From Phaeosaccion multiseriatum (taxonomy: Eukaryota; Protista; Ochrophyta, other classes), in NCBI GenBank assembly GCA_965112735.1, contig OZ218957.1, forward strand, positions 2,356,001 to 2,420,000: a stretch of DNA of 64,000 nt, given 5' to 3'. Positions 1,963 through 58,981 of the stretch are shown here, piece after piece (position 1 is the stretch's first letter; the number at the start of each line of letters is the position of its first letter). The notes under the pieces are model-generated. The model worked only from the letters and a program-made list of their open reading frames with translations, searched no databases and was not told the DNA's origin. The translations under genes were made by a program, and so were the position numbers.

Positions 1963-2304
1963 TCAACTTCCGATCTTCAGCACCTCGATCTCGAACCGAA
2001 GGGTTGCATTGGGCATGATTCCCCATGCCTCGAACCCGCCTGCGCCGTACGCGTAGTCCGGTGTTGCCTCTATGGTCGCCTTCTCCCCGAGCTTCATGGT
2101 CGCCACGCCCTCGTCCCATGCAGGAATCACAGACCCGCGCCCTATGTTGAACTCAAAGGGCTGCTGGCCGGCGTCCTTGGTTGACCAAAATTTCTGAGAC
2201 AAGTCGTTGTTCTTTCCATATCCCGTACAGTGCACGGTCACCTTCTGACCTGTCTGCGGGGTGGGTCCGTTCCCCTCCGAGGTGATTGTCTTTGTGAACC
2301 CCAT
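1963..2304 (-). CDS. FKBP12: FKBP-type peptidyl-prolyl isomerase, plant-type FKBP12, 113 aa, intronless
   Basis: MGFTKTITSEGNGPTPQTGQKVTVHCTGYGKNNDLSQKFWSTKD...PFEFNIGRGSVIPAWDEGVATMKLGEKA...DYAYGAGGF..WGIMPNATLRFEIEVL covers the full FKBP fold. ATG at 2304 is in frame with track ORF 1963..2556. Confidence 0.95.
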   Translation of the reverse strand: MGFTKTITSEGNGPTPQTGQKVTVHCTGYGKNNDLSQKFWSTKDAGQQPFEFNIGRGSVIPAWDEGVATMKLGEKATIEATPDYAYGAGGFEAWGIMPNATLRFEIEVLKIGS

Positions 2305-8305: not shown

Positions 8306-9368
8306 TCAGTCCTGACAGTAGCAGGGGTGTCCATTGGCGTGCACCCACTGCTTCATCTCCTCAAGGGCGGCAGGGGGCATATCCCCCCCACCCAACATGG
8401 TCTTTATAGAACTGCGGGCATACCAAGCAGTCCCAGGGACACATGACCTCGTCCGATCGGAGCCATTTCAGTATGGAGAGGCTCTTGGCGCTATGAACTG
8501 CGTGAGTACAGACAGATGCATCCCAACTGCACAGCTCCCGTGCGTTTGCATGCAGCCATTGCAGCACCTCCAGGTTGCCAGTCTTGGCCGCCCAGAAAGG
8601 CCCCTGCCTCCACTCGCTGTTTCCCCCTGCCGCCTCCATCTCAGCTCTGATCTTGGGATGGCGGAGGACCCATTCGACCACAGCAACACGCCCCGACTGA
8701 ATAGATACCTCCAAAAGACTGGAGCTAAACGGGGCGTTCACCTCGTCTGTGAGCATCCACTCCAGCATCTCCAGCTTCCCCTGCCCAGCTGCTTCTCTAC
8801 ATACATGTTCATTCCACGGGCACCTCTCCTTGCCCGGCAGGTCCTCCGTCCGCAGCCACTGGAGGATGCTGAGTCCGTGCCTCTGATTGCTCACAGCAGC
8901 CATGCACACCCTCTTATCCCAGGCACAGCCCATGCCGTGAAGAGCCTTGCACACGCGCACATCTCCGTACTCAGTAGCAGTCCGAAATGTCTTCTTACTC
9001 AGCTCATACCCGTACTTCCTGGCCCACCTCAAGCGCTCCACAGACTCCACCACCCTCCTGACAGGGGTGGTCTTGGCTGGATAAAGACGTCTGTAGTGTC
9101 CCTTCCACTCTTTGCTCACGGGTGCGATGAAGAAGTCGTGACCCTCTCCAGTCCACTCCATGACTGTGCTGAGCATCACGGTTTGAGCCAGAGCCTGGCC
9201 ACAAGCTTCGAAGGTCTCACCATCGCTTCCGTCGTTTCCAGCAAGGGCAGCGGGATAGGGACCAGGTGCCATGGCAGTACCACCTCTTCCATGCAAAACC
9301 CCTGAGGGGTCGGTGGGTGGAGCTGGCTGGAGCCGCTTGGCGCCCTGCTTGTGGTCAGGTCCCTCCAT
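8306..9368 (-). CDS. Ankyrin-like repeat protein paralog A (algal/giant-virus-type CPWD..AA..G.LEVLQWL repeats), with a frameshift near the C-terminus
   Basis: Repeats CAWDKRVCMAA, CPWNEHVCREAAGQGKLEMLEW, GNLEVLQWLHAN; highly similar to 9974-10972. The track ORF stops at 8361, but the paralogous tail MPPAALEEMKQWVHANGHPCYCQD* continues in another frame to 8306. The shift falls in a C7 run at 8383-8389. Confidence 0.75.
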
Positions 9369-9709
9369 ACCTCCTTTGTCCCCTTTCCCTCTGACTGTTT
9401 GATCGATGGGTAGAGGGGATCGGAGGGAAGCTCGGGGGTGTTATCTTCTGTGAAGCCTGGTATGGCGTGAAAAGGGACGGGGAGAGAGATACAGGAGGGT
9501 GGAATGGGAAGAAGCAGAGGCAAAGGGGGTATCTCTGTGGGACTGAGGCTGGAGAGGAAGGGGAAAGTTTAAACGTTCAAACACGAACGTATGATAGACT
9601 CGACAACCATCTTCCCAGCGTGCCCTCGGCTGCTCTTCGGCCCCTCCCAGCCTTTCCTAGTCACCGCCACAATCTACCTGCTGCCGTAGCTCCTCTCTAT
9701 AGATGGCAC

Positions 9710-9781
<72 letters not shown>

Positions 9782-9973
9782 TTCCATCGAAAGTTGGTCG
9801 TTCGGAGTCGGCATTTGCTATATGGATGGCCCTGGCTGGCTGGCTGGCTGATTGCAGCAGCGCAGCAACCTTGCTTGGGCCGTGTGCTGCACCACCCTTG
9901 TTCTCCTGCTGTTGCTTCTTTGCTGTATCACCTGGAGGCGCCGCAGCGCGAGGTGGGGAGGATTTAAATCGAC

Positions 9974-10972
9974 ATGAGGCAGTGCCTGGGCAGCAGCGTA
10001 GGTGCGGATAACAATGCCGCGGGGACTGGTGATGAAGCTGCTGTGGCCCAGGAGACCTACGTGGCCAGTGCCAAGGCCTTGGGGATGGAGGAGGTCCTTC
10101 GGAGAGTCGTGCTCCTTGTGGGGAAGGGCCACCACGTCTTCGTCGCCACCGTGAGCAAGGAGTGGCAAGCGCAGTATAGCATGGCGTTTCCTTCGCTCAA
10201 GACCTCCCTTCCAAGCGTGGTGGAGTCTGTCAAGCGCGTCCAGTGGGCCAAGAAGGAATGTGGGTACGAGCTGTGTGTGGGCACTTTCGAGGCGGCGGCA
10301 GAGTTCGGAGATGTGAGCGTGTGCGAGGAACTTCATCATTTGAGCTGCCCCTGGGACGAAGAGGCCTGCAAAGCCGCTGTGAGGAATGCTAGGCATGGGC
10401 TGCGTGTCCTCAAGTGGTTGCGATCCGAGGACCTCCCCGACAAGGAGCGCTGTCCTTGGTCTGAAGCTTGCGTCAGTTGTGAAGCTGCCAAGAGCGGCAA
10501 TGTGGAGGTTCTGGAGTGGCTGCTGTCTGATGGTCTCGATGGCTCTCCTGATGTTGGAATGTGGGAGGAAGCCATGATGGCGGGGCGCATTGAAGTACTG
10601 GAAATGCTCGTGGACCACCCCAAGGTCAGAGCTCGGATGGAGGCGGCAGGGGAGGATAGCCGGTGGAGGGATGGGCCTGAAGATATGGTCGAAGAGGGAA
10701 ATATGGAAGTGCTGCAATGGCTGCATGCAAACGCACGGGAGCTGTGCAGGTGGGATAAAGATGTCTGTTTTAACGCAGTGCATTTCGCCAAGAGCCTCTC
10801 TATCCTGAAATGGCTCCGATCGGAGGAGGTCATGTGCCCCTGGGACAGATGGGTATGCCCACAGTACTGGAAAGACGAACAAAGTTTTGACTGGAATATG
10901 CCCCCTGCCACGTTTGAGGAGATGAAGCAGTGGGTGCACGCCAATGGACACCCCTGCCACTGCCAAGACTGA
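9974..10972 (+). CDS. Ankyrin-like repeat protein paralog B, 332 aa, uninterrupted ORF
   Basis: N-terminal F-box-like segment (LVGKGHHVFVATVSKEWQAQY), then repeats CPWDEEACKAA, CEAAKSGNVEVLEWL, GNMEVLQWLHAN, CPWD, ending QWVHANGHPCHCQD. Confidence 0.85.
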   Translation: MRQCLGSSVGADNNAAGTGDEAAVAQETYVASAKALGMEEVLRRVVLLVGKGHHVFVATVSKEWQAQYSMAFPSLKTSLPSVVESVKRVQWAKKECGYELCVGTFEAAAEFGDVSVCEELHHLSCPWDEEACKAAVRNARHGLRVLKWLRSEDLPDKERCPWSEACVSCEAAKSGNVEVLEWLLSDGLDGSPDVGMWEEAMMAGRIEVLEMLVDHPKVRARMEAAGEDSRWRDGPEDMVEEGNMEVLQWLHANARELCRWDKDVCFNAVHFAKSLSILKWLRSEEVMCPWDRWVCPQYWKDEQSFDWNMPPATFEEMKQWVHANGHPCHCQD

Positions 10973-11328: not shown

Positions 11329-13919
11329 TCAAAGTAAGGCGGGGCTACCCTCTGCGGTGTTGGCACCCCCATGACCTAACTCCTCGGCGTTCTTGGCCTT
11401 GACCTCCTCCCACACCTCCTGCACGCCGGCAGGGATGACTCCTTCCGCAGTCGCCTTCCCCCACGCGCCCAGCGCCTCTTCCGTGGTTCCGTAAGGCTTG
11501 AAGGCACTGTGCCCCTGCGGGATGTTGTCGGCGAGGGAGGGGTAGTGCCTCTTGAGCAGATCTTTGAGGCCGTCCACCCCCTCAATCCAGTCGAGTCCCG
11601 TCTTGGTGTAGGTAGCTTCATTGTAATACTCGTTGAGAAACGGGTCCGCGTCCAGCCGTCTCGACGCCATCAAGAGGAACACAATGAAGGAGGTTTCCGA
11701 GATGGCGAAGCCCCTCAGCTTGTTCTCGAACATGTCGCCCACCAGCAAGTCGCACCTTTCAATTCCCTCAGGGGCGGGTCCGTAAATCGCCTCCAACTCC
11801 GCGGCCAATGGAGCACCTGCATTCTTCTTCAAGCCTCCTCCTCCTCCTTTCTTCTCGCCGGTCAACGCCGTCCAAGTCTTGTAGGGCTTGAGCTTGAGGG
11901 CACGGCGGAAGGCGTTGAAGCGGAGGATGCCCCTCTCCCGATCGCGATGAAGGTCAAGCGCCGCGAGGTCTACTCGGTCTGGCATGGACCTTCCCTCCTC
12001 GTCCGTTGGAGCAAGGTCCCGCAAGGCAGTGGGGTAGTTGTGTGGTACGAGTCCACCGCAAGGGTAGAACAGCGCTGAGTCCCAGAACTCTAGGGCGCGG
12101 TCAGCAGCAGCCGGAGGAGTGCTGCTCGCAGGGGCGCCAGTTGGTGGTACACCAGCAGCAGCAGGTCGTCGTATAGTTTTGCGACCCTCTGCACCAACGA
12201 GGTCTTCAAGCGGGATGAACTCGTTTCTGTTGGGTCCAACCACCAGGCCGGGGGGCAGCAGGGGGTGAAGGCGGTACACGGCGGCGAACTCTTCGGTGAG
12301 ACAGAAGGGAACACCTTTGTTATCCGCCTTCTTCTTCTCTGTCAGCTTGAACAGAGGAGGAAGGAACTTCAAGTTGATGCCCAAAGCTTTGGGAAGGCCC
12401 ACCCAGTTGGTTTTCATGCCCTGTGCAGAGTCGAAAGATCGGGTGGGTGGGTGGGTGGGTGGAAGTCGAGCAAGTCAAGGAGGGGGAGCAGGAGGAGGAT
12501 GAGGAGGAGGAGGATAGAGGATGAGAGCAAGGCGAGAGGAAGCTATGAGTAAGAGGATTCAAGAAGAAGATACTAAGATGTTGCGGACGCACCGGCGCAC
12601 TACTCACTTCTCCCTCTCGTGATACACTGCTCACTCCTCACTGTCCTGACACCACCCACTAACCACTACTCACTACTCACAATATCGAGAGTGCGGGTCT
12701 TAAGGAGCTCGATGGTCCAGTCGATGGTGTGAATCTTGGCCACCAGAGCGGCCACAACATTTCGTCCAATGCCGAAGAGTTCATCGTCACTCAGCGGCTC
12801 GTCTCCGGGAGCCTGATTGCGGGCCACTTCCTCCACAACGGCGTTGTGCTCCTTCAAGAAGAGCTCCTGGAGAAGAGAGACGCCCACCCAGGAGTTCTTG
12901 TTATCGCCGGTCAAGTGCACGCCTTCGCCGTTGTTATTCTTGTCCTCGCTCATGGGCAGCGTGTTGGGGTGGGTGGGATTGACCTTGAGCTTTCCTCCGC
13001 TCATGGTGCGGGCACGTTTGATGGTGGCCTCGTCGTTGCCATACAAGAAGCTGTGTAAAGAGAAGGGAGGGAGGGAGGGAGGGAAGGAAGGAAGGATGGG
13101 AGGGAGGGAGGGAGGGAGGGGAGGGAGGGCGGGGAGGGAGAGAGGGAGGGGAGGGAGGGGAGGGAGCGAGGGAGGGAGGGGAGGGAGGGAGGGAGGGGAG
13201 GGAGCGAGGCGCGGAGTGAGACACAGGCCTGTGTCTAAACAAACTTGCTTGTCTCTACCCTACTTCGTCTTTCTTTCTGGCTCTGCTCGCTCTCACGCCA
13301 CATTCTCATAGCACACGCACCTGGCATCCCACCACATGGTCCGGAAGTTGTCGTAGTTCCCATCCGGCCGCTCGAGGGTCTTACGGAACTTGAATGAGTG
13401 CATGGGGCACCCCGACTCCTTCCCCTTGCTGAGCTCCACGCCGCCCGTCGCCGAGGGATCATCCTTATGGCCGATCCAATCGTGCACCATTGTCTGAATC
13501 CACGCTGCGGCCATGATGTTGAGCTGGTCTCCAGCGGGCTTGAAGCCATCCCTCGCCAAGAGGCGCTGGGCGACGAGCTGCACGTCCGGGTCGCCATTGG
13601 CTCCGTTGAGTCGAAGCTCTACAGGCACGGGTGGCATGTTTCGACCCACCGGAGCCCCTGCTGAGCTCGTCCAGGGGTTGTTCACGTCCGTTCCGTAGCC
13701 GTCGTGCGGGCGGTACTTGGGAGGGTTGATGGGTGTGGTTTCTCCATCTCGGGGGGCCGGAAGTTCGGGCAAGGGAAGGAGATTGTTCGCCACCAAAACA
13801 TCGCGATGAATGATCACAGGAAGGAGGCCCAGCGGCTCCGGCCACCACTTGGACCAGTGCCAAAAGACATTCTGGAAGACCCAGTGCAGGCCCTCATAGA
13901 CCCGGGTCTTAATACCCAT
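11329..13919 (-). CDS. Fatty-acid alpha-dioxygenase (peroxidase-cyclooxygenase superfamily); exons 13919-13321, 13050-12681, 12420-11329; 686 aa
   Basis: Hallmarks of plant alpha-DOX/PIOX: WIQTMVHDW (distal His), WWDASFLYG, KEHNAV, AKIHTIDWTIELLKT, LTEEFAAVYRLHPLLP (catalytic Tyr and proximal His), RDRERG..RFNAFRR, FAISETSFIVFLLMASRRL (carboxylate-binding Arg). Exon lengths 599+370+1092 keep the frame. Confidence 0.92.
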
Positions 13920-14320: not shown

Positions 14321-15470
14321 TCATCTCTCTCGTGTCCATGCCCGCCTCATGTCGTTTGTCTTCGCAGTCGCACCCCCTGGGGGGCACGCACTGCTTCCAT
14401 CTCCTTCAAGCACCGCGGCAGGGGCCATATCCCAACCATCACCACTGGCATCTTTCAAGTACTGGCTGCGGGCATGTCGTAGTGCCCCAGGGACACACGA
14501 CCTCCTCCGATCTGATGATAGCCATTTCAGCACAGAGAGGCTCTTGCCTCCCAAAACGGTGCTAAAACGTGAAAACGGACATTCTGATCCCAGCTCTGCA
14601 CAGCTCCCGCACATTGGCACATTGGTTGCAGCCATTGCAGCACTTCAGATCACCCTGCCTCTCCGGCCGCCCAGCCACTACGGCCCATACGTCCACGCCG
14701 TGCGGGCCACCACTTCCGCCTCTCTCCGGGCTCTGACCCGTCTTAGGCTTGTAGAACACAAATTGGACCACAGGAATACGCCCCCCCGACCGAATAGATT
14801 CTAGCCAGAGGGGTAAGTCCCGAAAGGAGCCAGTCCAGCATCTGCAAGGAGCCACTCCAGCATCTCCAGCTTCCCCTGCCGGCCTGCTTCCAAACTCACA
14901 TGTGTATCCCACGGGCACCTCTCCTTGCCCGGCAGGTCCTCCGTCCGCAGCCATTGGAGGATACTCCACCCGTGCCTCTCATTGCCAACAGCAGCATTAC
15001 ACACTCCCTCATCCCAGGAACAGCCCATACGGTGAAGAGCCTTGCACACGGGCACATCTCCATACTCAGCAAGCCGCAGCTCGAAACGTCTCATAAAATG
15101 TGTTCCTGCTCCACAGCTCATACCCGTACTTCCTGGCCCATCTCAAGCGCTCCACGGACTCCACCACCCTCCTGACATGTGTTGTGTTGGCTGGACGGAG
15201 TCGTGTGTAGTGTCCCTCCCACTGAAGATGAAGAAGAAGAAGAATAATGCCCTCCATGATTAAGCTGAGCACCACGGCCTGGGCCAGGGCCTGGTCGCAA
15301 GCGTCGAGGGCCTCGCCATGGTTTCCCTCGCTTGCAGCAAGGCGGTGGGTTACCTCACCGGAATTGGCGCCCCCCCTTCCATTCCCCTTCCCCCTTCCTT
15401 CTGGGTTTCCACTCCTTCTATTCTATCCCGCACGGGTCAATCCGCGTCTCCCCTTCTGAAGCCTGGCAGG
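14321..15470 (-). pseudogene. Degenerate ankyrin-like repeat paralog C
   Basis: Fragments VRRVVESVERLRWARKYGYEL, EYGDVPVCKALHRMGCSWDEGVCNAA, LQWLRTEDLPGKERCPWD, GKLEMLEWLL and KSLSVLKWL are collinear with paralog A but spread over several frames. Confidence 0.85.
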
Positions 15471-33178: not shown

Positions 33179-34867
33179 ATGCCTCCTACGCCAGCCCTGC
33201 AGGGACAAGTTGAGGTTGTAGTGAAGGTGAGCGCGATCTACCCGAAGATTTGCGAGTGTGTAGATCAGGGAGGGCTTGGAAAGTGGAGTGAGTCGACATG
33301 CCGACTTTATTATTAACTCCCATCGCTTGTTCCTTCTCCTCTCCCCTCCCCTCCGCTCACCCTCCTGCTCTGTGTGCCTCTGCACCGTGTTCAGCGGGCG
33401 CGCAACCTCAAGCCCGGAGGAGTGGCACCCACCCCTGAGACGCCATGCGATCCCTTCGTGGCTTTGACTGTGGGGGATACGACCGTGCGGACGAGCGTGG
33501 TGGACGACGAGGCCAACCCCTCCTTTGAGGAGAGCTTCAGGTTCCAGAATGTGCAGAAGGACGATAAGATGGAGATCCAAGTGTTCAACAAGTGCGCAGA
33601 CGGGATGGAGGACCAACTCATTGGCACCGCGATGGTGCGTAGAGCAGAGTAGCCTCCCCTCCCTTACTCATTCTCTTCTTGCCCACTTCTTCGCTCACTC
33701 ACTTACTCACTCTCTCGCCGCCTCCTTCGCCCACTCCTTTGCTTCCTCCCTCTCTTGCCCACTCCCTCACTCACATCCTGACCCACACCCTCACACACCC
33801 ACACACACCCTCTCTCTTATACACAGGTGGCACATGGTGATTGGGGCCTGCCCGACTACCCCAAGCTTGCGTGGCACCCCATCCTCACCGACCTCAACAC
33901 ATGCGGAGGCGAGATCCAACTCTCCATCGAGTGGGACTTGCAGCTCAACTTCAAGCAGGTTAGGAAGTGTGTGCGTGTGGGTAGTTGGAGGTATTGGTGC
34001 GGAGCTGTGCTGTTCATCTGGTGGCTGTCTGTGTGGCTCTTCACCTTGCACGTGCGTCTCTACCCTCAACCCCCTCCCTCCGTCCCTTCCCCGCCCTCCT
34101 GCCTCCTCCCGCACCCCCCTCCCCACCCTCCCTCCCTCCCTCCTGGCCCACACACACAACAGCCCTTCAAAGCCATTTCCGATGCCTCCTCCATGACGGG
34201 TTCCCTCGTGTCGGTCATCGATGAGCCTCTGGACCGTGTGCTCGCGAAGGTCAGCAACTGCATCACCACACCTCTCCGTTTCCTTCAACAGCGTTCCCCC
34301 ATGGAGCAAGCAGCGATAGGAGCAGTCGTGGTCTGTGTCGGAGGCGGTGCGGGGCTGTGCGTGGCGGTGCCCCTTATCTTCTTCCTTCCTGTCACACTCT
34401 TCTTCGCCTTTGGCATCGGGACGGCTCTGCTCGTGGCCTCTCCTCTTCTGCTCTTGTTTGGGTGGCTTCTCATCAGCGCGATACCCATGCAGAGACGGCT
34501 GGTGGTGCCCCTGCTGATCCAGGTGGGTGGGTGGGTGTGTGGGTGTATGGGTGGGTGTGTGTGTGGAAGGAAGGGTGGATGGGTGCGTGGGTGGGTGGAA
34601 GGGTGCGCAGGTGGACACACCGAAAGAGAGAGAGAGAGAAGAGAGAGAAGGACTAAACTCAAACTCAAACCCACCCCAAACTGTCTTCCCCCTCCACTTG
34701 CCATCTCTCTCCCGTCCATTGCCATCCACTGCCATCCACTGCCATCCCGTCATCAGGTGGTACCGTGGCTGGGGCCGGTGGAGAAGTATGTCCTGACCCC
34801 TCCTGCGACCACGGAGAGAGCAGCGCGGAAGCCGCCTCCTCATGTCGACTCATTGGGCTTGGATTGA
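33179..34867 (+). CDS. C2-domain protein with a 60-residue uncharged hydrophobic segment; exons 33179-33226, 33395-33634, 33827-33958, 34163-34522, 34757-34867 (296 aa)
   Basis: GQVEVVVK-RARNL...CDPFVALTVG...RTSVVDDEANPSFEESFRF...MEIQVFNK...DQLIG...GEIQLSIEW is a C2 fold. It is followed by AAIGAVVVCVGGGAGLCVAVPLIFFLPVTLFFAFGIGTALLVASPLLLLFGWLLISAIPM. Confidence 0.85.
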
Positions 34868-35280
34868 CTGATATCGTCCATTTCGTCATCCCGCAGGCTT
34901 GCATTGAGAATCATCCAAGTGGTGGTCTTCTATCTAAGGCTTTGGGTGATGGAATTGATTGATTGGCTTAGTTCAACGCTATCCAGTAATCCGCTGGTTG
35001 GATACAGATTTTGTTTCAAGGAAGGGGGGTAGGAGGGGGGGGGGGGGCATCAGACAGAGACAGTACACAGAGAGAGGCACAAGCAAGGAGAGGGTAGCAT
35101 GTTAATATGACGCAAGAGAATAAGGAAGGGAAGAGCACAGCAGGGCTTGAAAGGAGGAGGAGGAGGAAGAGGAGGAGGAGAGAGAGAGGAGGAGGGAGAG
35201 AGAGGGAGGTAGGAGCAAGTAAATGGGGGTACGGGTGGTACAGTATCAGTACCAGTTTTGTAGGCACAGCACATAGGGGG

Positions 35281-35536
35281 GTACAAAGGCTATATATGTT
35301 ATAGCAAGATGATTGTTCAATGAGGTAGGCAGGTACAAGGCTATATATGTTATAGCAAGATGATTGTTCAATGAGGTAGGCAGGTACAAGGCTATATATG
35401 TTATAGCAAGATGATTGTTCAATGAGGTAGGCAGGTACAAGGCTATATATGTTATAGCAAGATGATTGTTCAATGAGGTAGGCAGGTACAAGGCTATATA
35501 TGTTATAGCAAGATCATTGTTCAATGAGGTAGGCAG
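35281..35536. repeat. 51-bp minisatellite (gtacaaggctatatatgttatagcaagatgattgttcaatgaggtaggcag), 5 near-identical copies
   Basis: Direct inspection; units are contiguous with no unique spacers. Confidence 0.92.
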
Positions 35537-35886
35537 GAAGCAGAGCAGCCAGCCACATGCACACACACACAACACAATTTTTTGTTAAAACAATTTTTAA
35601 TTTTCCATTCATTTTGGCATCCCACCGAACCGGGCCCCTTTTCTCTTCCTTTTGTTCGTTAAAAAAGAGGAAATCTCCCTTTTCCATACGCCTCTATCCG
35701 GTGAAATCTATACTGGAAAGGCCTATACCCTATAACCACCACCCGGCCACGTCCTTCCCTTCCCACTAGGCCGGTCTGGTGGGAGCGGCCCTACCCCACT
35801 CACTGTATGGCACTGTGTGCCACAAAGATGGTACCCTATGGTGCCTAGGATGGCACTAGATGGCACCCTACGGCCCCCTGCCCCGC

Positions 35887-38800
35887 TCATTTCGTGGGCT
35901 TCTTCCTGGCGAGAAACCTCGCCCTCGCCGCAGCCACCGCATCCGCCCGGCCCTGCCCCTCCGCCCCCGCGTCGGTCTTGGATACACCGATAGCAGAGGT
36001 AGGAGCAGCGCCGCTACCACTCCTTCCTCCCCCTCCCTTCCCGCTACTAGTGTTGCTGTTGCTGTTGCTGTTGCTGTCTGGCGGGGGGGGTAGGGTAGCC
36101 AAGCCACACAGCCTTCTGTAGTCCACAAGGCTAAGGTCACCGACGGCATCCATATGCTTGGAGATCCATCGACGCTTCACTGCAACCACGTGACGCATGA
36201 ATGGCCTGTGGGGGGGGGGGGACCAAGGATGGACAAGCGGCAGGAGGGGGGCTGGAGTGTGAGGTATTGGCCCCGTCTGTCTCTGCTGTCCTCCGCGCAT
36301 GGTGCTCTGGGAGAGCAAGGTACGCACACGCACACACATGCACACACACACGCATGCACAAACACATGCACAGACACACACACGCACACACACACGCACA
36401 CACACACACGCACACGCACACACACACACGCACACACACACATGCACAAACACATGCGTACGCACGCACCTTCCTGTGTAGACGAGCTCGGTGTAGAGCA
36501 CATGGTCCGGGGGCTCCGTGTGCAGGAGAGAGGACGAGTGATGGAGGTACCTGAGGGGGAGAGAGAGAGAGAGGGAGAGTAGAGAGAGATACAGAGAGAG
36601 AGAGGGGGAGAGTGAGGGACAGACAAAGAGAGAGAGGGAGAGAGAGTGAGAGTAGAGAGAGACACAGAGAGCGAGAGGGGGAGAGTGAGGGACAGACAGA
36701 GAGAGAGGGGGAGAGTGAGGGACAGACAGAGAGAGAGAGGGGGAGAGTGAGAGTAGAGAGAGACACAGAGAGCGAGAGGGGGAGAGTGAGGGACAGACAA
36801 AGAGAGAGAGAGGGAGAGAGAGTGAGAGTAGAGAGAGACACAGAGAGCGAGAGGGGGAGAGTGAGGGACAGACAGAGAGAGAGAGGGGGAGAGTGAGGGA
36901 CAGACAGAGAGAGAGGGGGAGAGTGAGAGTAGAGAGAGACACAGAGAGCGAGAGGGGGAGAGTGAGGGACAGACAGAGAGAGAGAGGGAGAGAGAGTGAG
37001 AGTAGAGAGAGACACAGAGAGCGAGAGGGGGAGAGTGAGGGACAGACAAAGAGAGAGAGGGAGAGAGAGTGAGAGTAGAGAGAGACACAGAGAGACAAAG
37101 AGGGTACAGAGGGAAGAGGAGGAGGAGAAGGAGGAGCAGGAGAAGAAACGTTAGACCAGCCCTTTCCTTCCCCTCCCCCTTTCCAGCTTTCTCCCCTCCC
37201 CCTCCCTCTCTTCCCTCCCTCCCCGCCCATCCACCCATCCCCCCCCCACTTCCCCCTCCCCTCCCCTCCCCTCCCCTCCCGTCCCCCCCGCCGAAACTCA
37301 CATGAGCTGAAGGTCCGTATTCTGCGTGAGACCGGGCACCCCCAGCGGCCTATACACGTCCTGTTTGGCACACTTTTGCCCCGCGTTGGTAAAGAGCCCC
37401 GCACAGAGCGCCTTGCAAACAGAGTCCAAGTCACCCCTGCAGCTGGACAGTCTCCCCACCGCCACACTTCCTCCTCCACGCCCTCCACTCCCTCCTCCTC
37501 CTCCTCCTGATCCTCCTCCTCCTTCTGTTGGAGTGAGTAGCTTAGCCTTGGCGACTTCTTCTGCCAGCTGTACCACCACCTTGCGAGCGGTCTTGAGGGC
37601 TCTGATACGCAGGAAGGATTTCTTTGCAAAGTCATCGCTGAAACCGCTTGCCTGCTCCGCCCCACCCCCCCCCCCCCACACACACACCCACACACACAAC
37701 ACGCAGAAACCCACAAACACACAGATCCAATCCGATGCGATCCAATCCCAGAAAGAAAAATGTGATCCCACACACACGCACACACGCACACACACAGGCA
37801 AACGCATGTACACAGACACAGGAAGAGAGAGACACGCACGTACACAGACACAGATAGAGACAGAGAGCGTACGTCAACAAAAAAAAACAGACGGGGGCCT
37901 CACGAAGAGATACAATGGAGAGGAGATGGTATAGAGGGAGGGAGGGAGGGAGGGAGGGAGGGAGGGAGGGAGGGAGGGAGGGAGGGAGAAAGGAAGACAG
38001 AGAGAAAAACGGGTGGTAGATATGAGTCCTTCCCCCCCGACCCTCTCCCCTCTATTCAGTCAATAAAGCGACCCTCTCCCCTCTATCAAGTCAATAAAGC
38101 GACCCTCTCCCCTCTATTAAGTCAATAAAGCGACCCTCTCCCCTCTATCAAGTCAATAAAGCGACCCTCTCCCCTCTATCAAGTCAATAAAGCGACCCTC
38201 TCCCCTCTATTAAGTCAATAAAGCGACCCTCTCCCCTCTATCAAGTCAATAAAGCGACCCTCTCCCCTCTATCAAGTCAATAAAGCGACCCTCTCCCCTC
38301 TTGCTCTCGACTCACCTCCCACGCCTGATACACCCGGAGGTAGGTAATTGGGTCTCCCTTGGGGTGCCAGAAGCGTGCATGGGCTGCCTCTGCCTCTTCA
38401 TCTACACCACCACCACCCCCACCACCACCACCACCACCACCACCACCACCTGCCCTGCTGTTGCCGCCCTTGTTGGGGCCACTGTTGGGTTTCCCTCTCC
38501 TGCTGTACCATACGCTCTCTGTGCTGAGCAGGCTGACAATGGTGACAATCTCGAGCAGGCAACCGAGCCGAGCGGCCTCCACCACCACTCTTGTAGAGGG
38601 AGGGAGGGAGGGAGGGAGGGAGGGAGGGAGAGGGGGCAAGGGTCGGATTTGGAACAAGCAGAGCTGGCAGCAAGGAGGATCACATTCTCTTGCAACCTAC
38701 CCACCTACACCATACCTACCCACCCACCCACCCACCCACCCAACCAACCTGCTGAGGCTCGGTTCCAGCGGAAAGGCACTCATCTTGTGGCCCACCTCCG

Positions 38801-38967
38801 TAACGTTTCCGTAACTGTCAATGGCCCCCAGACAGAACAGCTCCAAAAGTGCCTCCTTGAGCTGCTCCGTGGAAGGGCTGTCCAAGTATTCGAACCCGAG
38901 TACGTCCTTGATGCCCAGCACCTGAGGGAGGAGGAGGAGGAGGAGGAGGAGGAGGAGGAGGAGGGGG

Positions 38968-39002
<35 letters not shown>

Positions 39003-40057
39003 GAGGAGCAGGAGCAGGAGCAGGAGGAGGAGGAGGAGGAGGAGGAGGAGGAGGAGGAGGAGGAGGAGGAGGAGGAGGAGGAGGAGGAGGGGGGGGATGG
39101 GGAGGGGGAGGGAGAAGGAGGGAGGGCTAGGGTCATGGTCATGCTGGTCCCTTGCCCTCAGTTCTTCTGAAACGCCAAGCCCTTCGTCCTGACACCTCCT
39201 TCCCTCTGTCCTGAGTCCTGCCACTTCCCTCTGTGCACTCAGTCCTGACACCCCTAACCTTGAGATACAGCACGGTGTTGGCCAAGTTGGTCCTGAGAAT
39301 CTCTGGCACAGTTTCGTGCATCATCAGGGCCAGGCACTCTCTGGGGGATGGCAGTGGATGGAGGGAAGGTCGGAGGCAGGGGAGGGCAGGAGGGAGGAAG
39401 GGAGAGACAGAGGAAGGAAGAGAGGAGGGGAGGAAAGGAGGGAGGGAGGAGGGGGGGGGCAGGAGGGAGGAAGGGAAAGACAGAGGAAGGAAGAGAGGAG
39501 GGGCGGGAAGGAGGGAGGGAGGAGGGGGGGGGCAGGAGGGAGGAAGGGAAAGACAGAGGAAGGAAGAGAGGAGGGGCGGGAAGGAGGGAGGGAGGAGGGA
39601 TATGATGCATGGTATGCATTGCCAGGAAAGTACAACAGTGAGTGTGCAGTCACCGTGCAGTCACACCAACAGATATGAGGAGTGTACAGTCACACAGTGC
39701 AAGTGCAATCACAACAACACACTACCTGGTGTAGAGGCACAACAACACACTACCTGGTGTAGAGGCACAACAACACACTACCTGGTGTAGAGGCACAACA
39801 ACACACTACCTGGTGTAGAGGCACAACAACACACTACCTGGTGTAGAGGCGATAGCACTGGCCCGCCGCCGTCCTGCCTGCTCGGCCTGCTCGCTGCTGG
39901 GCAGCCACCTGTACCCGACCCGACCCGACACGGACAAGGGAGTGAGGGGGTTGGTGAGTGGGTGAATGGGTGAGTGGGTGAGTGAGTGGGTGAGTGAGTG
40001 AATGGGTGAGTGAGAAACAACAACAATAACAACAAACGCAACAAGAACAATAACAAT

Positions 40058-40095
<38 letters not shown>

Positions 40096-43000
40096 CCACA
40101 AGGGAAGGAGGACAGTCCGCCGTAATGACTTCCTTCTGCCCCACCCTACCCTACCCCAACCCACTCTTCTCCACCCTCCCCTCCCCTCCCCTCCCCTCCC
40201 CTCCCCTCCCCTCCCCTCCCCTCCCCCACCCTACCCGCGATATCGGCACGACAACGAGCGACTCCATCCTCCTGTTGGGATCGAAGGCCTTCTGCTTGAC
40301 GTAGCCCGTGTCGACGACAAACTTGACACCAGGCACCGTCACGGACGTCTCTGCAATGTTGGTGGCCACCACCACCTGATTATAGCAACAGCAGTTGGTG
40401 ATACAACAGCGTTGATTCAAAGGAGGAGGGAGGGAAGGGGATCAAGGATATGGCAACAGCAGCAACAGCAGTTGGTGATACAACAGCATTGATTCAAAGG
40501 AGGAGGGAGGGAAGGGGATCAAGGATATAGCAACAGCAGCAACAGCAGCAGCAGCAGCAATTGGCGATACAGCAGCACAGCATGGCTCAAGTGTCAAGGG
40601 CATAACAGCAGCAGCAGTTGGTGATACAATAGCATTGTACAAGAGCATTGTATGGGTCAAGGGCATAAGCCTGCGACTGCCTGCCTGTCGCACACTGCCC
40701 GTATGCCTACGACTGCCTGCCTCTATGCCTCTGCGACTGCCTGCCCATATGCCTGCCACTACCTGACTGCATGTGTGCCTCTGCGACTGCCTGCCCATAT
40801 GCCTGCCACTACCTGACTGCATGTGTGCCTCTGCGACTGCCTGCCCATATGCCTGCCACTACCTGACTGCATGTGTGCCTCTGCGACTGCCTGCCCATAT
40901 GCCTGCCACTACCTGACTGCATGTGTGCCTCTGCGACTGCCTGCCCATATGCCTGCCACTACCTGACTGCATGTGTGCCTCTGCGACTGCCTGCCCATAT
41001 GCCTGCCACTACCTGACTGCATGTGTGCCTCTGCGACTGCCTGCCCATATGCCTGCGACTGCCTGCCCATATGCCTACGACTGCCTGCCCATATGCCTCT
41101 ACGACTGCCTGCCCATAAGCCTACGACTGCCTGCCCATATGCCTACGACTGCCCGCCCATATGCCTACGACTGCCTGCCCATATGCCTACGACAGCGACT
41201 GCCTGCCCATATGCCCACGACAGCCTGCCCATATGCCTCTACGACTGCCTGCCCATATGCCTACGACAGCCTGCCCATATGCCTACGACTGCCTGCCCAT
41301 ATGCCTACGACTGCCTGCCCATATGCCTCTACGACTGCCTTTATGCTTCTGTCCCCACCTTGCGTGTGCGCGTCATGTCCACCCCTTGAAAGGCGATTTG
41401 CTGCATGTCCCCGGCCAAGGATCCGTACAGGGGCACCACCTTAAGGGATGGGATGGCAGTGGATGGGTGAAGGGGGATGGCAGTGAACGGAAGAGGGAGG
41501 TAGGGGGAAGGGGTAGGGGGTGGTAGACCGTCACCTTTCGCGTCCTCGACCAGCAAGGTCCAAAAGCTCCCTCTCTCTGCCCTCTCTCCCCTCTGCTCTC
41601 CCTCTCTTTGCGCTTGCTCTATCCCCTATTCTCTCTCTCTTTCATCCCCTCTTCTCTCGCCTCTAATCTCTCTAATCTCTCATCTTTCTCTCCCCTCCCC
41701 TCCCCTCTGCCTCCCTGCTCTTCAGTCCCTCCTCTCTCTGCCTCTGCCCTCCATCTGTCTTCCCCCTGTCCTCTCTCTCTGACCTTCATGCTGATCTCCT
41801 GCTCGGGAGCGACCTTCGCTGCCTCCTCAATGAGGCGACACGCCTTCTCTATCTCATCCTGCCCTGTTAGGAACAGCAGTATGTGCCCCTCGCCCTGCCC
41901 TCGACATATGCGTGCAAATAGCACAAACATACACACAGAGAGAAAGGGGGGAGGGATGGAGAGGGAGGGGGAAAGACAAGAGAGAGAGGGACAGAGAAGG
42001 GGAGAGTGGGAGAGACAGAGGGAGGGAGGGAGGGAGGGAGGGAGACGGGACGGGCCAATAGTCAGGTTGGTGAAGAGAAGAGCACTACGAGTAAGCCACA
42101 GGAGCAGCAGCAATGACAGAGATAGGTACACAAGTATAGGTAAGTGAGGAGAGAGAGAAGGGTGCCGCTGCAGCAGTTGGTGATACAATGTACATGCATC
42201 AGCGGCAGCGGGGCTATAGGAGGGAGGGTTGGTTCGGAGGGCTCATTCACACCTCCCTCCCTTCCTCTGTAGCACCAACTCCCTCACCTGCGATCGGTGT
42301 ATCTTCATGACGAGCTCCACGGCGTCAGTGACGTATCTGCTTCCCGAGGCGGGGCCGTTCGCCGTCATCACCTGCATGTTTGTGGGTTGGTGATACAGCA
42401 GCAGAGGCAGTGGAAGGAACAGCATTACTTGGTGATATAGCAGCAGTTGGCGATACAGCAGCAGCAGTAGCCTTGCTGTGAGTATAGGGCACTGGTAAAG
42501 AAGGTCTAACACAGAATGTAACTGCAACCCTCACCCACCTGCTTGTGCTTGCTGTGGTACACGTCCACATCGAAGAGCCTGCCCGGCACCGCCACGCTCG
42601 GGCACTTTCCGTAGTACGAACAGAACTTGTCCACATCCAGAGTGGCGCTCGTCACCACCGCCTGCCAGCAGTTGACCGTACAGAAAACAGCAGTCGGTCA
42701 TACCGTCACACAGCAGTTGGTCATACAGTCACAACAGTAATTGTAGCTCACAGCTGATGGTCAAAGAGCCACAGCAGTTACCCATACACCCCATTCCTCT
42801 CCTCCCTCTCCTCCCTCCCTCCCTCTCCTCCCTCCCTCCCTCTCCTCCCTCCCTCCCTCTCCTTCCTCCCTCCCTCTCCTCCCTCCCTCCCTCCCTCTCC
42901 TCCCTCCCTCCCTCCCCCCCTCTCCTCCCTCCCTCCCTCCCTCCCCTCCCCTGACCTTGAGATCTGGTCTGGCCTTGAGCGCTCTCTTGAGCAGCCCAAA

Positions 43001-44507
43001 GAGCACGTCGGTGTGTATGCTCCGCTCGTGCGCCTCGTCCAGCATCACGCATCCGTATCTGCGCAGGCAGAGGGATGAGGCATTCTATACGTTAGGGGGG
43101 TTTGGGCTAGTAAGGTTGCCCTTCGCTTTCATCTCCCCCCCCCTTTTCTTCCGCCGCTGTGAGAGGCCCATACCTGCTCAAGAGGGGGTCCGCCAGGCAC
43201 TCACGCACCAGCACGCCGTCGGTCTAGAGAAGAAAGGGAGGGGCAAGAGAGAAGTGAGAAGGAAAGATGGATGTACCCTGTAAGAGAACGCGTAGAGGGG
43301 GTCTATTGAAAGGGAACGAGGGGTGTGATAGGACGCGGGAGGAGAAAAAAGGGAAGATGGATCAAAGAGAGCGCCAATAAAGCCGGGCTTGACACAGGCT
43401 TGACATGGGCTTGACATGGGCTTGACATGGGCTTGACATGACCTTTACTCGCCAAATGCTTTTCGCCATTTCCCCATCATGTGCTCTTCCTCCTCCTTCT
43501 CCTTCTCGTCCTCCTGCTGTGCTGCTGCTCCTCCTCCTCCTCCTCCTCCTCCTCCTCCTCCTCCTCCTCCTCCTCCTCCTCCTCCTCCTCCTCCTTCCTC
43601 CTCCTCCTCCTCCTCCTTCCCCCTCTCTCCCTACCACCTCCGTCCTCTCTCCCTATCTCCCACCCATTCCGCCTCTCTCCCTCCCTTCCTCACGCACCAT
43701 GTACTTAATCCGGGTATCCTCAGACGTGCGGTCATCAAAGCGAACGGTGTACCCCACCTCTCCACCCAACCTGCCTCCGCCCCTCTCCTCTGCGACTCTC
43801 TTGGCCACCGAAGTCGCAGCAACCCGCCTGGGCTGCGTCACCGCCACCTGCAGCCGTCCCTGCTTCCGGGTCGGCCCCGCCTCCACTCTTCTTTGGGCTT
43901 GGGTTAGCTCCTGCGGAGACGGCATCTTAATCTTGTCTCCCCACCTGCTGGGCTTGGTCGTCGTCGCTGCTGCTGCTGCTGCTGCGAGCTTAGGAGCATC
44001 CTCTGCGCCAGCCGCCCCTCCCCCTCCTGCTCCCGCCACCCCCCCTCTCTCTCCTTCCTGCAGCAGCTCCAGGAGGTACTGGGGGATCTGCGTGGTCTTG
44101 CCCGAGCCTGTCTCACCCGTGCACACGACCACCTGATGCTCTCTGACGGCGCGCATGAGCTCGCCCTTAAAGAGGGTGACGGGCAGGTCTTCTCGTGCGA
44201 GTCTGATGGCCTCGCTTCTTTCATCTTCTTCAGCAGGCCGCTGCCTCTTCCTGCCCCTCTCTCCCCCCCCCCCTCTCTCGCTTCCTTCGCTCCCTTCGCT
44301 TAGGCTGCGCCTGCGCGTCTCCCAGCGACCCTTCCTTCCTTTGCTGCGGCCCTCCCTGCTACCCTCGCCGTTGGCTCGACTTTCATCTCCCCGTACGCGA
44401 TCGCGCCCCTCGTCAAGCTCCCGCTTCCTTCGCCCTGCACTTCTACTCCTACTTCTACTGCTGCTGGGGCTACTCCTGCTGCGGCTGCGGGAGCTTGAGC
44501 GTGCCAT
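35887..44507 (-). CDS. DEAH-box RNA helicase (Prp22/DHX8-DHX40-like), many exons, RS-rich N-terminus
   Basis: [121 protein letters not shown]2 ([15 protein letters not shown]), OB (YLHHSSSL) and terminal [12 protein letters not shown]. Confidence 0.93.
36560..37100. repeat. Compound GA-rich intronic satellite (gagagtgagggacagacagaga... units)
   Basis: Direct inspection. Confidence 0.85.
38039..38300. repeat. 31-bp intronic minisatellite (gaccctctcccctctatcaagtcaataaagc), ~8 copies
   Basis: Direct inspection. Confidence 0.92.
39716..39850. repeat. 28-bp tandem repeat spanning an exon/5'-splice-site junction of the helicase gene, ~5 copies
   Basis: Unit actacctggtgtagaggcacaacaacac. On the - strand it reads ...ctctacaccag|GTAGT. 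Confidence 0.9.
40668..41340. repeat. Intronic satellite built from cgactgcctgcccatatgcct with 52-bp higher-order units
   Basis: Direct inspection. It explains the spurious Cys-rich ORFs at 40923-41526. Confidence 0.92.
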
Positions 44508-58142: not shown

Positions 58143-58981
58143 ATGTCGCTGCTAGTGTTTATGATAGTGGGTACATCGGAGCCGCTCTACGAGGCAGACC
58201 TGGGCGTCCAACAGCACCAGCAGCAGAAACAGCAGCAGGAGCAGCAGCAGGTGCAGTCGCGCTCGGAAGACAGCGCGCACTTGAACCAGTTCATCATCCA
58301 CAGCTCGCTGGACATGGTGGATAGGAAGCAGTGGACTACGTCGAGCACGTGAGGCAACTCTATCCTCTGTACCTTCCTCTTTCACACCCCTCCCCTTCTC
58401 ACCCCCCTCTCTCCTCAACCTCTCCTTCATACCGCCTCTCCCTTGCTCTCACTCTCTCCTACACCACCCCCTTCCTGACTTGTCCCTTCTTCTCCCCTCC
58501 TCTGCATCTTTACCTCCCTTGGGACTCCTCCCCCTCAGGTATCTCAAGACGGTGGACAAGTTTAACGACCAGCTCGTCTCTGCCATGCTCACTCCGGGGG
58601 GCGTCAAGCTGCTGCTGCTACACGAAGGCCGCTCCGACGAAGCGGTCAAGATCTTCTTCAACGAGGTTCAAGAGCTCTACGTCAAGGTGTGTGTGTGTTC
58701 CATTTAAAAGGGGGGCCTCCAAACAATCTTGCAAGCTTGCGATATGTGGGTGGTGGGCGTGGTGTCCGGCGGTTGCCTTCACCCTCTGCCCCGCGTGACA
58801 ATGAAAACCACCTGACACGGCTAACGAAAGCTGCTGCTGCTGCTGCTGCTGCTTGATTCGCCAACTGCTGCTCTTTTGTCCCCCTCAGCTGCTCATGAAC
58901 CCTTTCTACGAGTACGACACACCCATCATCTCTCCGACATTCGACCTGAGGGTGCGGGGTCTGGCTCGGCGGATGCTGTGA
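58143..58981 (+). CDS. TRAPPC2: TRAPP complex subunit 2 (sedlin/Trs20); exons 58143-58348, 58539-58686, 58889-58981
   Basis: FMIVGTSEPLYEA...HLNQFIIHSSLDMVD...W...YLKTVDKFNDQLVSA..TPGGVKLLLLH...[35 protein letters not shown]. Confidence 0.95.

Follow-up and report, generated by a model that had tools for sequence, protein, structure and literature searches.

On the minus strand of a 64,000-nucleotide stretch of the ochrophyte Phaeosaccion multiseriatum (contig OZ218957.1, positions 2,356,001 to 2,420,000; the whole stretch is referred to as the window), a gene was identified which is likely to be an intact, resident gene of the nuclear genome that encodes a heme-dependent fatty-acid alpha-dioxygenase (alpha-DOX), i.e., a member of the peroxidase-cyclooxygenase superfamily that belongs to the diatom-type branch of the alpha-DOX family. 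As judged from its translated exons, the gene is a complete, intact member of this family with every known catalytic residue, and the encoded enzyme is probably active.

Gene structure, family membership and catalytic residues

All searches, alignments and trees were made exon by exon, whereby the residue numbers of the gene model were obtained as exon position plus offset. The sequence-only reading of this DNA had proposed a three-exon gene of 686 amino acids at 11329-13919, and this proposal was borne out, with the gene residing on the minus strand, both introns being canonical and the junctions being confirmed by intronless homologues. The parts of the gene are the following:

13919-11329, minus strand: whole gene, three exons, 686 codons plus stop, 2061 nucleotides (nt) coding
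13919-13321, minus strand: exon 1, 599 nt; start codon ATG at 13919-13917; 199 codons plus 2 nt of a split Ser codon; N-terminal base region and distal-heme motif MVHDW
13320-13051, minus strand: intron 1, 270 nt, GT..AG, phase 2, rich in (CCCT)n repeats
13050-12681, minus strand: exon 2, 370 nt; WWDAS/FLYG junction and motif KIHTIDW
12680-12421, minus strand: intron 2, 260 nt, GT..AG, phase 0
12420-11329, minus strand: exon 3, 1092 nt; 363 codons plus TGA

Three intronless homologues located on eukaryotic metagenome contigs (L004, L002 and L001) were aligned by tblastn, and in each of them exons 1 to 3 align in one frame, exons 1 and 2 being separated by exactly one codon and exon 3 following directly on exon 2. 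Because these homologues run through in frame in this way, the position of either splice junction is confirmed with codon precision. Intron 1 is absent from the three intronless homologues and likewise from L086, the closest genomic relative described below, the flanking exons being one codon apart. The N-terminus of the window protein lies within 6 residues of the start of the intronless homologues, and an N-terminal signal peptide was not found in it. At the opposite end, a C-terminal extension of about 50 amino acids, ending in ..(A/S/P)LL, is common to the window protein and the seven sequences most closely related to it, whereas the plant enzymes are without it. The idea that the terminal ..ALL serves as a type 1 peroxisomal targeting signal was considered and rejected, as the ends of the relatives read ..LLG, ..LLS and ..LLE. 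Within the 64-kb window, no second alpha-DOX copy was found.

Family membership was revealed by the match of all three exons to the animal haem peroxidase profile PF03098 (An_peroxidase), which they cover in order from position 1 to 523 of 530 with E-values of 7e-11 to 1e-23, while a search of NCBIfam gave zero matches for any of the three exons. Among the protein sequences of solved structures, the best matches of every exon are the alpha-DOX enzymes of rice and Arabidopsis (E 1e-23 to 1e-53; sequences from the PDB), to the former of which the identity amounts to 43% for exon 1, 49% for exon 2 and 47% for exon 3. The exons cover the profile and the structural chains as follows:

Exon 1: PF03098 profile 1-102; rice 4KVJ chain 34-217 (E 3e-25)
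Exon 2: PF03098 profile 159-281; rice 4KVJ chain 221-328; Arabidopsis 4HHR chain 236-344 (E 2e-23)
Exon 3: PF03098 profile 297-523; rice 4KVJ chain 332-616 (E 2e-53)

Together, the three exon alignments span the rice chain without a loss at either junction. The next-best solved structures are far weaker, namely peroxinectin (2.5e-4) and lactoperoxidase (5e-5), and neither a cyclooxygenase (COX) nor a linoleate diol synthase (LDS) is among the solved-structure matches of any exon at E<=1e-3. The earlier expectation that the protein groups closer to alpha-DOX than to ordinary heme peroxidases or COX is hence upheld by the solved-structure matches. Cyclooxygenase and fungal linoleate diol synthase belong to the same superfamily and operate with heme plus tyrosyl-radical chemistry, but the Arg-Arg pair and the His forming a carboxylate site beside the Tyr are the arrangement of alpha-DOX.

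For residue mapping, each exon was aligned to the 618-residue Oryza PIOX with native rice numbering. The catalytic elements which had been recognised within MVHDW, KIHTIDW, VYRLH and MASRRL were all found to be present:

13484-13482, minus strand: H146 (rice H157), distal His, motif MVHDW, exon 1
12731-12729, minus strand: H307 (rice H311), carboxylate-contacting His, motif KIHTIDW, exon 2
12276-12274, minus strand: Y372 (rice Y379), catalytic Tyr, motif VYRLH, exon 3
12267-12265, minus strand: H375 (rice H382), proximal heme His, motif VYRLH, exon 3
11661-11656, minus strand: R577/R578 (rice R558/R559), carboxylate-binding Arg pair, motif MASRRL, exon 3

In a family alignment of ten sequences (A1) the equivalents of H311, R558 and R559 are invariant. 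Y372 aligns to the position which is changed in the rice entry 4KVL (VYR to VFR) as compared to 4KVJ, the former being the Y379F mutant. Furthermore, D147, T194, W196 and D198 align to rice D158, T210, W212 and D214, and the Ser of this T-x-W-x-D-x-S stretch is encoded by the codon which intron 1 interrupts; the Asp following the distal His together with the T-x-W-x-D-x-S stretch is presumably the calcium site described in the Arabidopsis structure paper. With rice alpha-DOX/PIOX (4KVJ/4KVK/4KVL) and Arabidopsis alpha-DOX1 (4HHR/4HHS) the window protein consequently has in common the PF03098 domain in the same order over the whole length, the distal and proximal His, the catalytic Tyr, the carboxylate His and Arg-Arg pair, the T-x-W-x-D-x-S stretch and the lack of a signal peptide. 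It differs from them by its C-terminal extension, by two low-complexity inserts and by its position on a separate branch; moreover, the two plant enzymes are biochemically characterised, whereas the window protein is known here from its sequence.

Relatives and phylogenetic position

A word search with exon 3, restricted to relatives of 200-635 amino acids, matched 787 of these. Its top matches are environmental fragments (61-69% identity) and the diatom Grammatophora oceanica (MMETSP0009, 64%), followed further down by red algae (about 47%), Ulva (45%), Ectocarpus and Ascophyllum (40%), land plants (34-41%) and Cystobacter (37%). The identity to marine environmental sequences and Grammatophora oceanica amounts to 63-77%, as compared to 37-49% for bacteria and plants. 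A second word search with a full-length relative together with cluster look-ups added Seminavis robusta, whose homologue is annotated as 'Alpha-dioxygenase 2', Helicotheca tamesis, Detonula confervacea, Thalassiosira rotula, Skeletonema marinoi, Porphyra and Klebsormidium. Three relatives reside on contigs of 22-71 kb as uninterrupted open reading frames (ORFs) in DNA of 45-48% GC and with eukaryotic neighbours (importin, Arf, kinases, DUF6824), while a scan of JGI metagenomes with exon-3 peptides did not reveal a close relative. The closest named relatives are alpha-DOX-like proteins of diatoms, that of Grammatophora being 64% identical over exon 3 and of similar length, and within the immediate subclade, Grammatophora included, the C-terminal extension is held in common with the window protein. 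The diatom genes found on contigs differ in having no or short introns and 45-48% GC, whereas the window gene possesses introns of 260-270 nt within intron-rich DNA of 58% GC and is probably that of a non-diatom host.

The alpha-DOX family is very widespread. Homologues occur in at least 583 bacterial species among the GTDB species genomes, the carriers including Saprospiraceae, myxobacteria, cyanobacteria, actinomycetes, Acidobacteriota and Chloroflexota. As to diatoms, alpha-DOX-like proteins of Skeletonema, Pseudo-nitzschia, Fragilariopsis and Fistulifera were described by Di Dato et al. (2020; PMC7096440) and placed as sister to plant alpha-DOX, while Thalassiosira rotula was stated in the same paper to be without an alpha-DOX-like gene. 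A 657-residue protein of the alpha-DOX clade labelled Thalassiosira rotula (P0138; EukProt EP00585 / MMETSP0910) was nevertheless found, and the trees place it as the sister of the Detonula sequence; either the gene was overlooked in that paper or the label or content of the transcriptome is wrong. That orthologs might prove ubiquitous and vertically inherited in ochrophytes had been named beforehand as a circumstance which lowers the novelty, and the novelty is largely lowered in this sense, given the common occurrence of homologues in diatoms, namely those of Grammatophora, Seminavis, Helicotheca, Detonula, Thalassiosira rotula and Skeletonema and those of red, green and brown algae.

The phylogeny which the sequence-only reading had called for was carried out with exon-wise trees, and these put the window protein into a diatom-dominated eukaryotic clade. 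Each tree was built from columns covered by one exon and comprised alpha-DOX family rows, with neither COX nor LDS as outgroup. For exon 3, a quick tree of 100 rows and a careful tree of 53 rows (LG+C20+F+G4; support given as ultrafast bootstrap / Shimodaira-Hasegawa-like approximate likelihood ratio test, SH-aLRT) were calculated, which agree with each other. The careful tree puts the window protein into a group of eight rows with Grammatophora and environmental sequences (97/86), which is part of a clade of 18 rows with Thalassiosirales and Helicotheca (100/99), which in turn is part of a clade of 26 rows with Seminavis (98/95). All named members of the clade are diatoms, and most of its members are unnamed environmental sequences. 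Outside the 26-row clade reside the red algae, Ulva and a group of brown algae and streptophytes (90/87), and the split between all eukaryotic rows and the 11 bacterial ones, which form a clade on a long branch of their own, has a support of 100/100. Grouping of the window protein with the brown algae was rejected by the approximately unbiased (AU) test at p=7e-7 and grouping with the streptophytes at p=1e-4. The tree of exon 1 recovers the same clade (99 SH-aLRT), and the tree of the short exon 2 the same neighbourhood without strong support; as the trees of all three exons place the gene alike, it is not a mosaic. The label 'plant-like', under which the protein had been introduced, is imprecise, considering 43-49% identity to rice versus 63-77% to marine and diatom sequences and the rejection of the streptophyte grouping.

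The brown-algal homologues from Ectocarpus sp. (P0069) and Ascophyllum nodosum (P0094) are stramenopile proteins of the alpha-DOX family with the same domain as the window protein. They are only 40% identical to it over exon 3 and group with streptophytes (90/87), apart from the diatom-type clade, their monophyly with the window protein being the grouping rejected at p=7e-7. As the brown-algal homologues go with streptophytes and not with the diatom-type clade, two distinct alpha-DOX lineages therefore exist in ochrophytes. The cyanobacterial enzymes CsDOX, CalDOX and LepDOX agree with the window protein in family and catalytic residues, whereas the cyanobacterial and other bacterial homologues differ from it by an identity of about 37-40% and by their separate long-branch clade.

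Introns, composition and the question of transfer

The closest genomic relative of the gene, L086, is located on a marine contig of 20 kb (ENA ERZ27293420; 47% GC), shows 63-68% identity and is also present on a TARA metagenome scaffold. It possesses an intron of 77 nt (9921-9997) exactly at the position of window intron 2, the junctions reading ..LKL|gtaagt..acag|GMRTNW in L086 and ..LDI|gtgagt..acag|GMKTNW in the window. At the position of window intron 1, L086 is without an intron, and it carries a second, in-frame intron at about 9297-9410, in the region of exon 1, which the window gene is without. From the intron position common to both genes it follows that a spliced eukaryotic gene was in place before the two lineages split. 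Diatom homologues possess two introns at most and in part none, and the low intron number is a habit of the gene family in the diatom-type clade, as exemplified by the intronless L004, L002 and L001. With its host-type introns and composition and the intron position in common with L086, the gene is a long-term resident of eukaryotic algal genomes. Its composition is native and without a compositional trace of transfer: the GC content of its exons is 57-61% and that of third codon positions (GC3) 70-76%, the window having a GC content of 58% and the neighbours GC3 values of 74% (FKBP12), 68% (flanking ankyrin ORF) and 79% (exon cores of the helicase). The (CCCT)n repeats of intron 1 are the same as those in the introns of neighbouring genes. 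The neighbours recognised in the window are the following:

1966-2304, minus strand: FKBP12-type peptidyl-prolyl isomerase, complete, single exon, 113 amino acids
3635-3868, plus strand: short exon, recognised by eye, CobW/ZNG1-like GTPase
8334-9305: single-exon ankyrin-repeat ORF, Pfam Ank_4 match
9974-10972, plus strand: single-exon ankyrin-repeat ORF, Pfam Ank_4 match
14321-15121, minus strand: single-exon ankyrin-repeat ORF, Pfam Ank_4 match
33317-33649, plus strand: short exon, recognised by eye, C2 domain
35019-35584, minus strand: intergenic tandem repeat, in protein space SCYNIYSLVPAYLIEQS, at least 5 copies
about 37300-44500, minus strand: DEAH-box RNA helicase, at least 13 short exons and at least 12 introns, motif QRAGRAGR
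58285-58704, plus strand: short exon, recognised by eye, sedlin/TRAPPC2-like

The alpha-DOX gene is bordered, at a distance of about 350-400 bp, by the ankyrin-repeat ORFs, which share the recurring pattern LKWLRSEDLP..CPWDE. The introns of the DEAH helicase are packed with (CCCT)n and with homopolymer-coding microsatellites, and at 40762-41142 a unit of about 50 nt is repeated in tandem. For the FKBP12 protein the best database identity is 79%, and an exact copy was not found in the public collections searched, from which the proteins of this genome thus seem to be missing.

That the gene has fewer introns than its neighbours had been taken by the sequence-only reading as a hint of horizontal acquisition. 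The comparison is correct for the DEAH helicase but fails for the FKBP12 gene and the ankyrin-like ORFs, which have a single exon, and as an argument for transfer it is weak, since diatom homologues are intron-poor, intron 2 is common to L086 and GC and GC3 match those of the neighbours. A recent acquisition from bacteria, cyanobacteria or land plants might be thought of in view of the many bacterial species with homologues, cyanobacteria, myxobacteria and actinomycetes among them, and of the difference in intron number to the helicase. Against it stand the separation of the bacterial rows on their long branch (100/100), the rejection of the streptophyte grouping, the 37-49% identity to bacteria and plants versus 63-77% to algal relatives, the native composition and the presence of two host-type spliceosomal introns, one of which is common to L086. 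A recent capture of this kind was ruled out by the trees together with the shared intron position, because the gene was already spliced and eukaryotic before the lineages of the window and of L086 parted, and the probability left to such an origin is vanishingly small. The earlier suggestion of a horizontal acquisition is therefore dismissed as regards recent bacterial, cyanobacterial or plant sources, and what is left of it is an old transfer between algae of the Ochrophyta.

In this case, an alpha-DOX of the diatom lineage, already equipped with intron 2, would have entered the ancestor of a non-diatom ochrophyte host and would later have acquired the composition, intron 1 and the inserts of the present gene. 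Whether the nesting among diatom sequences is foreign at all depends on the lineage of the host. In favour of an old transfer, the window protein is placed three supported nodes deep (97/86, 100/99, 98/95) among named diatoms and beside Grammatophora oceanica, monophyly with the brown-algal homologues was rejected, intron 2 is common to L086 on its compact marine contig of 47% GC, and the window with its 58% GC and intron-rich genes is unlike typical diatoms. Most of the clade, however, is made up of environmental sequences without a name, which may also derive from organisms other than diatoms, and the one neighbour with a name stems from a transcriptome of the MMETSP set, in which cross-contamination can occur. 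Furthermore, the gene is without a compositional trace of transfer, and an ancient duplication followed by differential loss yields the same tree. An old passage from alga to alga is hence put forward tentatively, as a possibility of minor probability. If the host is a relative of the brown algae, both ancient paralogues with differential loss and an old diatom-to-host transfer fit. The full scenario, in which a brown-alga-related non-diatom ochrophyte received its only alpha-dioxygenase laterally from a diatom, kept the donor intron and domesticated the gene while brown algae carry the streptophyte-like lineage, is rated as doubtful, slightly more so than the transfer as such.

Predicted function and significance

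A role in alpha-oxidation, with oxylipins or aldehydes as products, is the natural inference for the encoded protein. The reaction scheme of alpha-DOX, which involves a tyrosyl radical, oxygenation at C2 and formation of a Cn-1 aldehyde, comes from the plant enzymes reviewed in PMC9305512, and the steps given here for the window protein are modelled on the enzymes of rice and Arabidopsis. Accordingly modelled, the heme would be bound by His375, with His146 on its distal side, and oxidation of the heme would generate a radical on Tyr372. The carboxylate of the fatty acid is expected to be clamped by Arg577/Arg578 and His307, whereby C2 would be turned toward the tyrosyl radical. Next, hydrogen abstraction at C2 and subsequent addition of O2 would yield a 2(R)-hydroperoxy fatty acid, which may finally decay to the Cn-1 aldehyde and CO2 or be reduced to the 2-hydroxy acid. 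Since a signal peptide is missing, a location in the cytosol or in association with membranes or lipid droplets is likely, by analogy to the plant enzymes.

Several points weigh against the assignment of this function. In the literature searched, no assayed enzyme of the diatom-type clade was found, regiospecificity and substrate range would have to be extrapolated from enzymes which are 43-49% identical, and exon 3 holds two low-complexity inserts of 19 and 9 residues that are unique to the window protein in the subclade alignment (A2). The interpretation of these inserts as hidden introns was rejected, because their lengths of 57 and 27 nt fall well short of those of the gene's own introns. 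One alternative is a family member with another main activity, be it a peroxidase, a fatty-acid dioxygenase of other regiospecificity or an enzyme whose substrates are carboxylates other than fatty acids. It is invited by the uncharacterised state of the clade, by the conserved C-terminal extension of about 50 amino acids which plant enzymes are without, and by the findings that rice alpha-DOX also takes pipecolic acid, which is not a fatty acid, and that cyanobacterial enzymes vary in their chain-length preference (PMC9305512). Yet the equivalents of H311, R558 and R559, which define the attack on C2 beside the Tyr, are all kept and family-invariant, so that a different main activity is regarded as improbable. 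Even less probable, indeed very unlikely, is that the gene is silent or decaying and its enzyme no longer made: the two inserts unique to the gene would suit such a fate, but the frame of 686 codons is intact, the splice sites are canonical, the family-invariant residues are all present, the identity to relatives over conserved columns is 77%, and the terminal branch equals that of Grammatophora (0.175 each). An intact gene for a heme-dependent fatty-acid alpha-dioxygenase thus remains the likely reading. With respect to products, the cyanobacterial enzymes CsDOX, CalDOX and LepDOX were shown experimentally to make Cn-1 aldehydes and, according to the same review, prefer shorter chains (PMC9305512).

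As a single gene, the finding is an ordinary addition to a known family and is not surprising, because alpha-DOX-like genes of diatoms have been on record since 2020 and carry annotations in public genomes; for stramenopile algae, alpha-DOX is already known from these published diatom genes (PMC7096440) and from the annotation in Seminavis robusta. The evolutionary pattern is of note, in that the diatom type stands clearly apart from the type found in brown algae and streptophytes and that relatives have one intron in common. If true, the diatom-to-host transfer would represent a eukaryote-to-eukaryote transfer of an enzyme of oxylipin and aldehyde signalling between algal classes. As alpha-DOXs make fatty aldehydes without cofactors, the enzymes of the diatom-type branch are of possible interest for biocatalysis. 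Beyond the individual case, the gene and its relatives mark a large diatom-type branch of the alpha-DOX family, which could supply 2-hydroxy fatty acids as well as odd-chain or long-chain aldehydes in marine algae.

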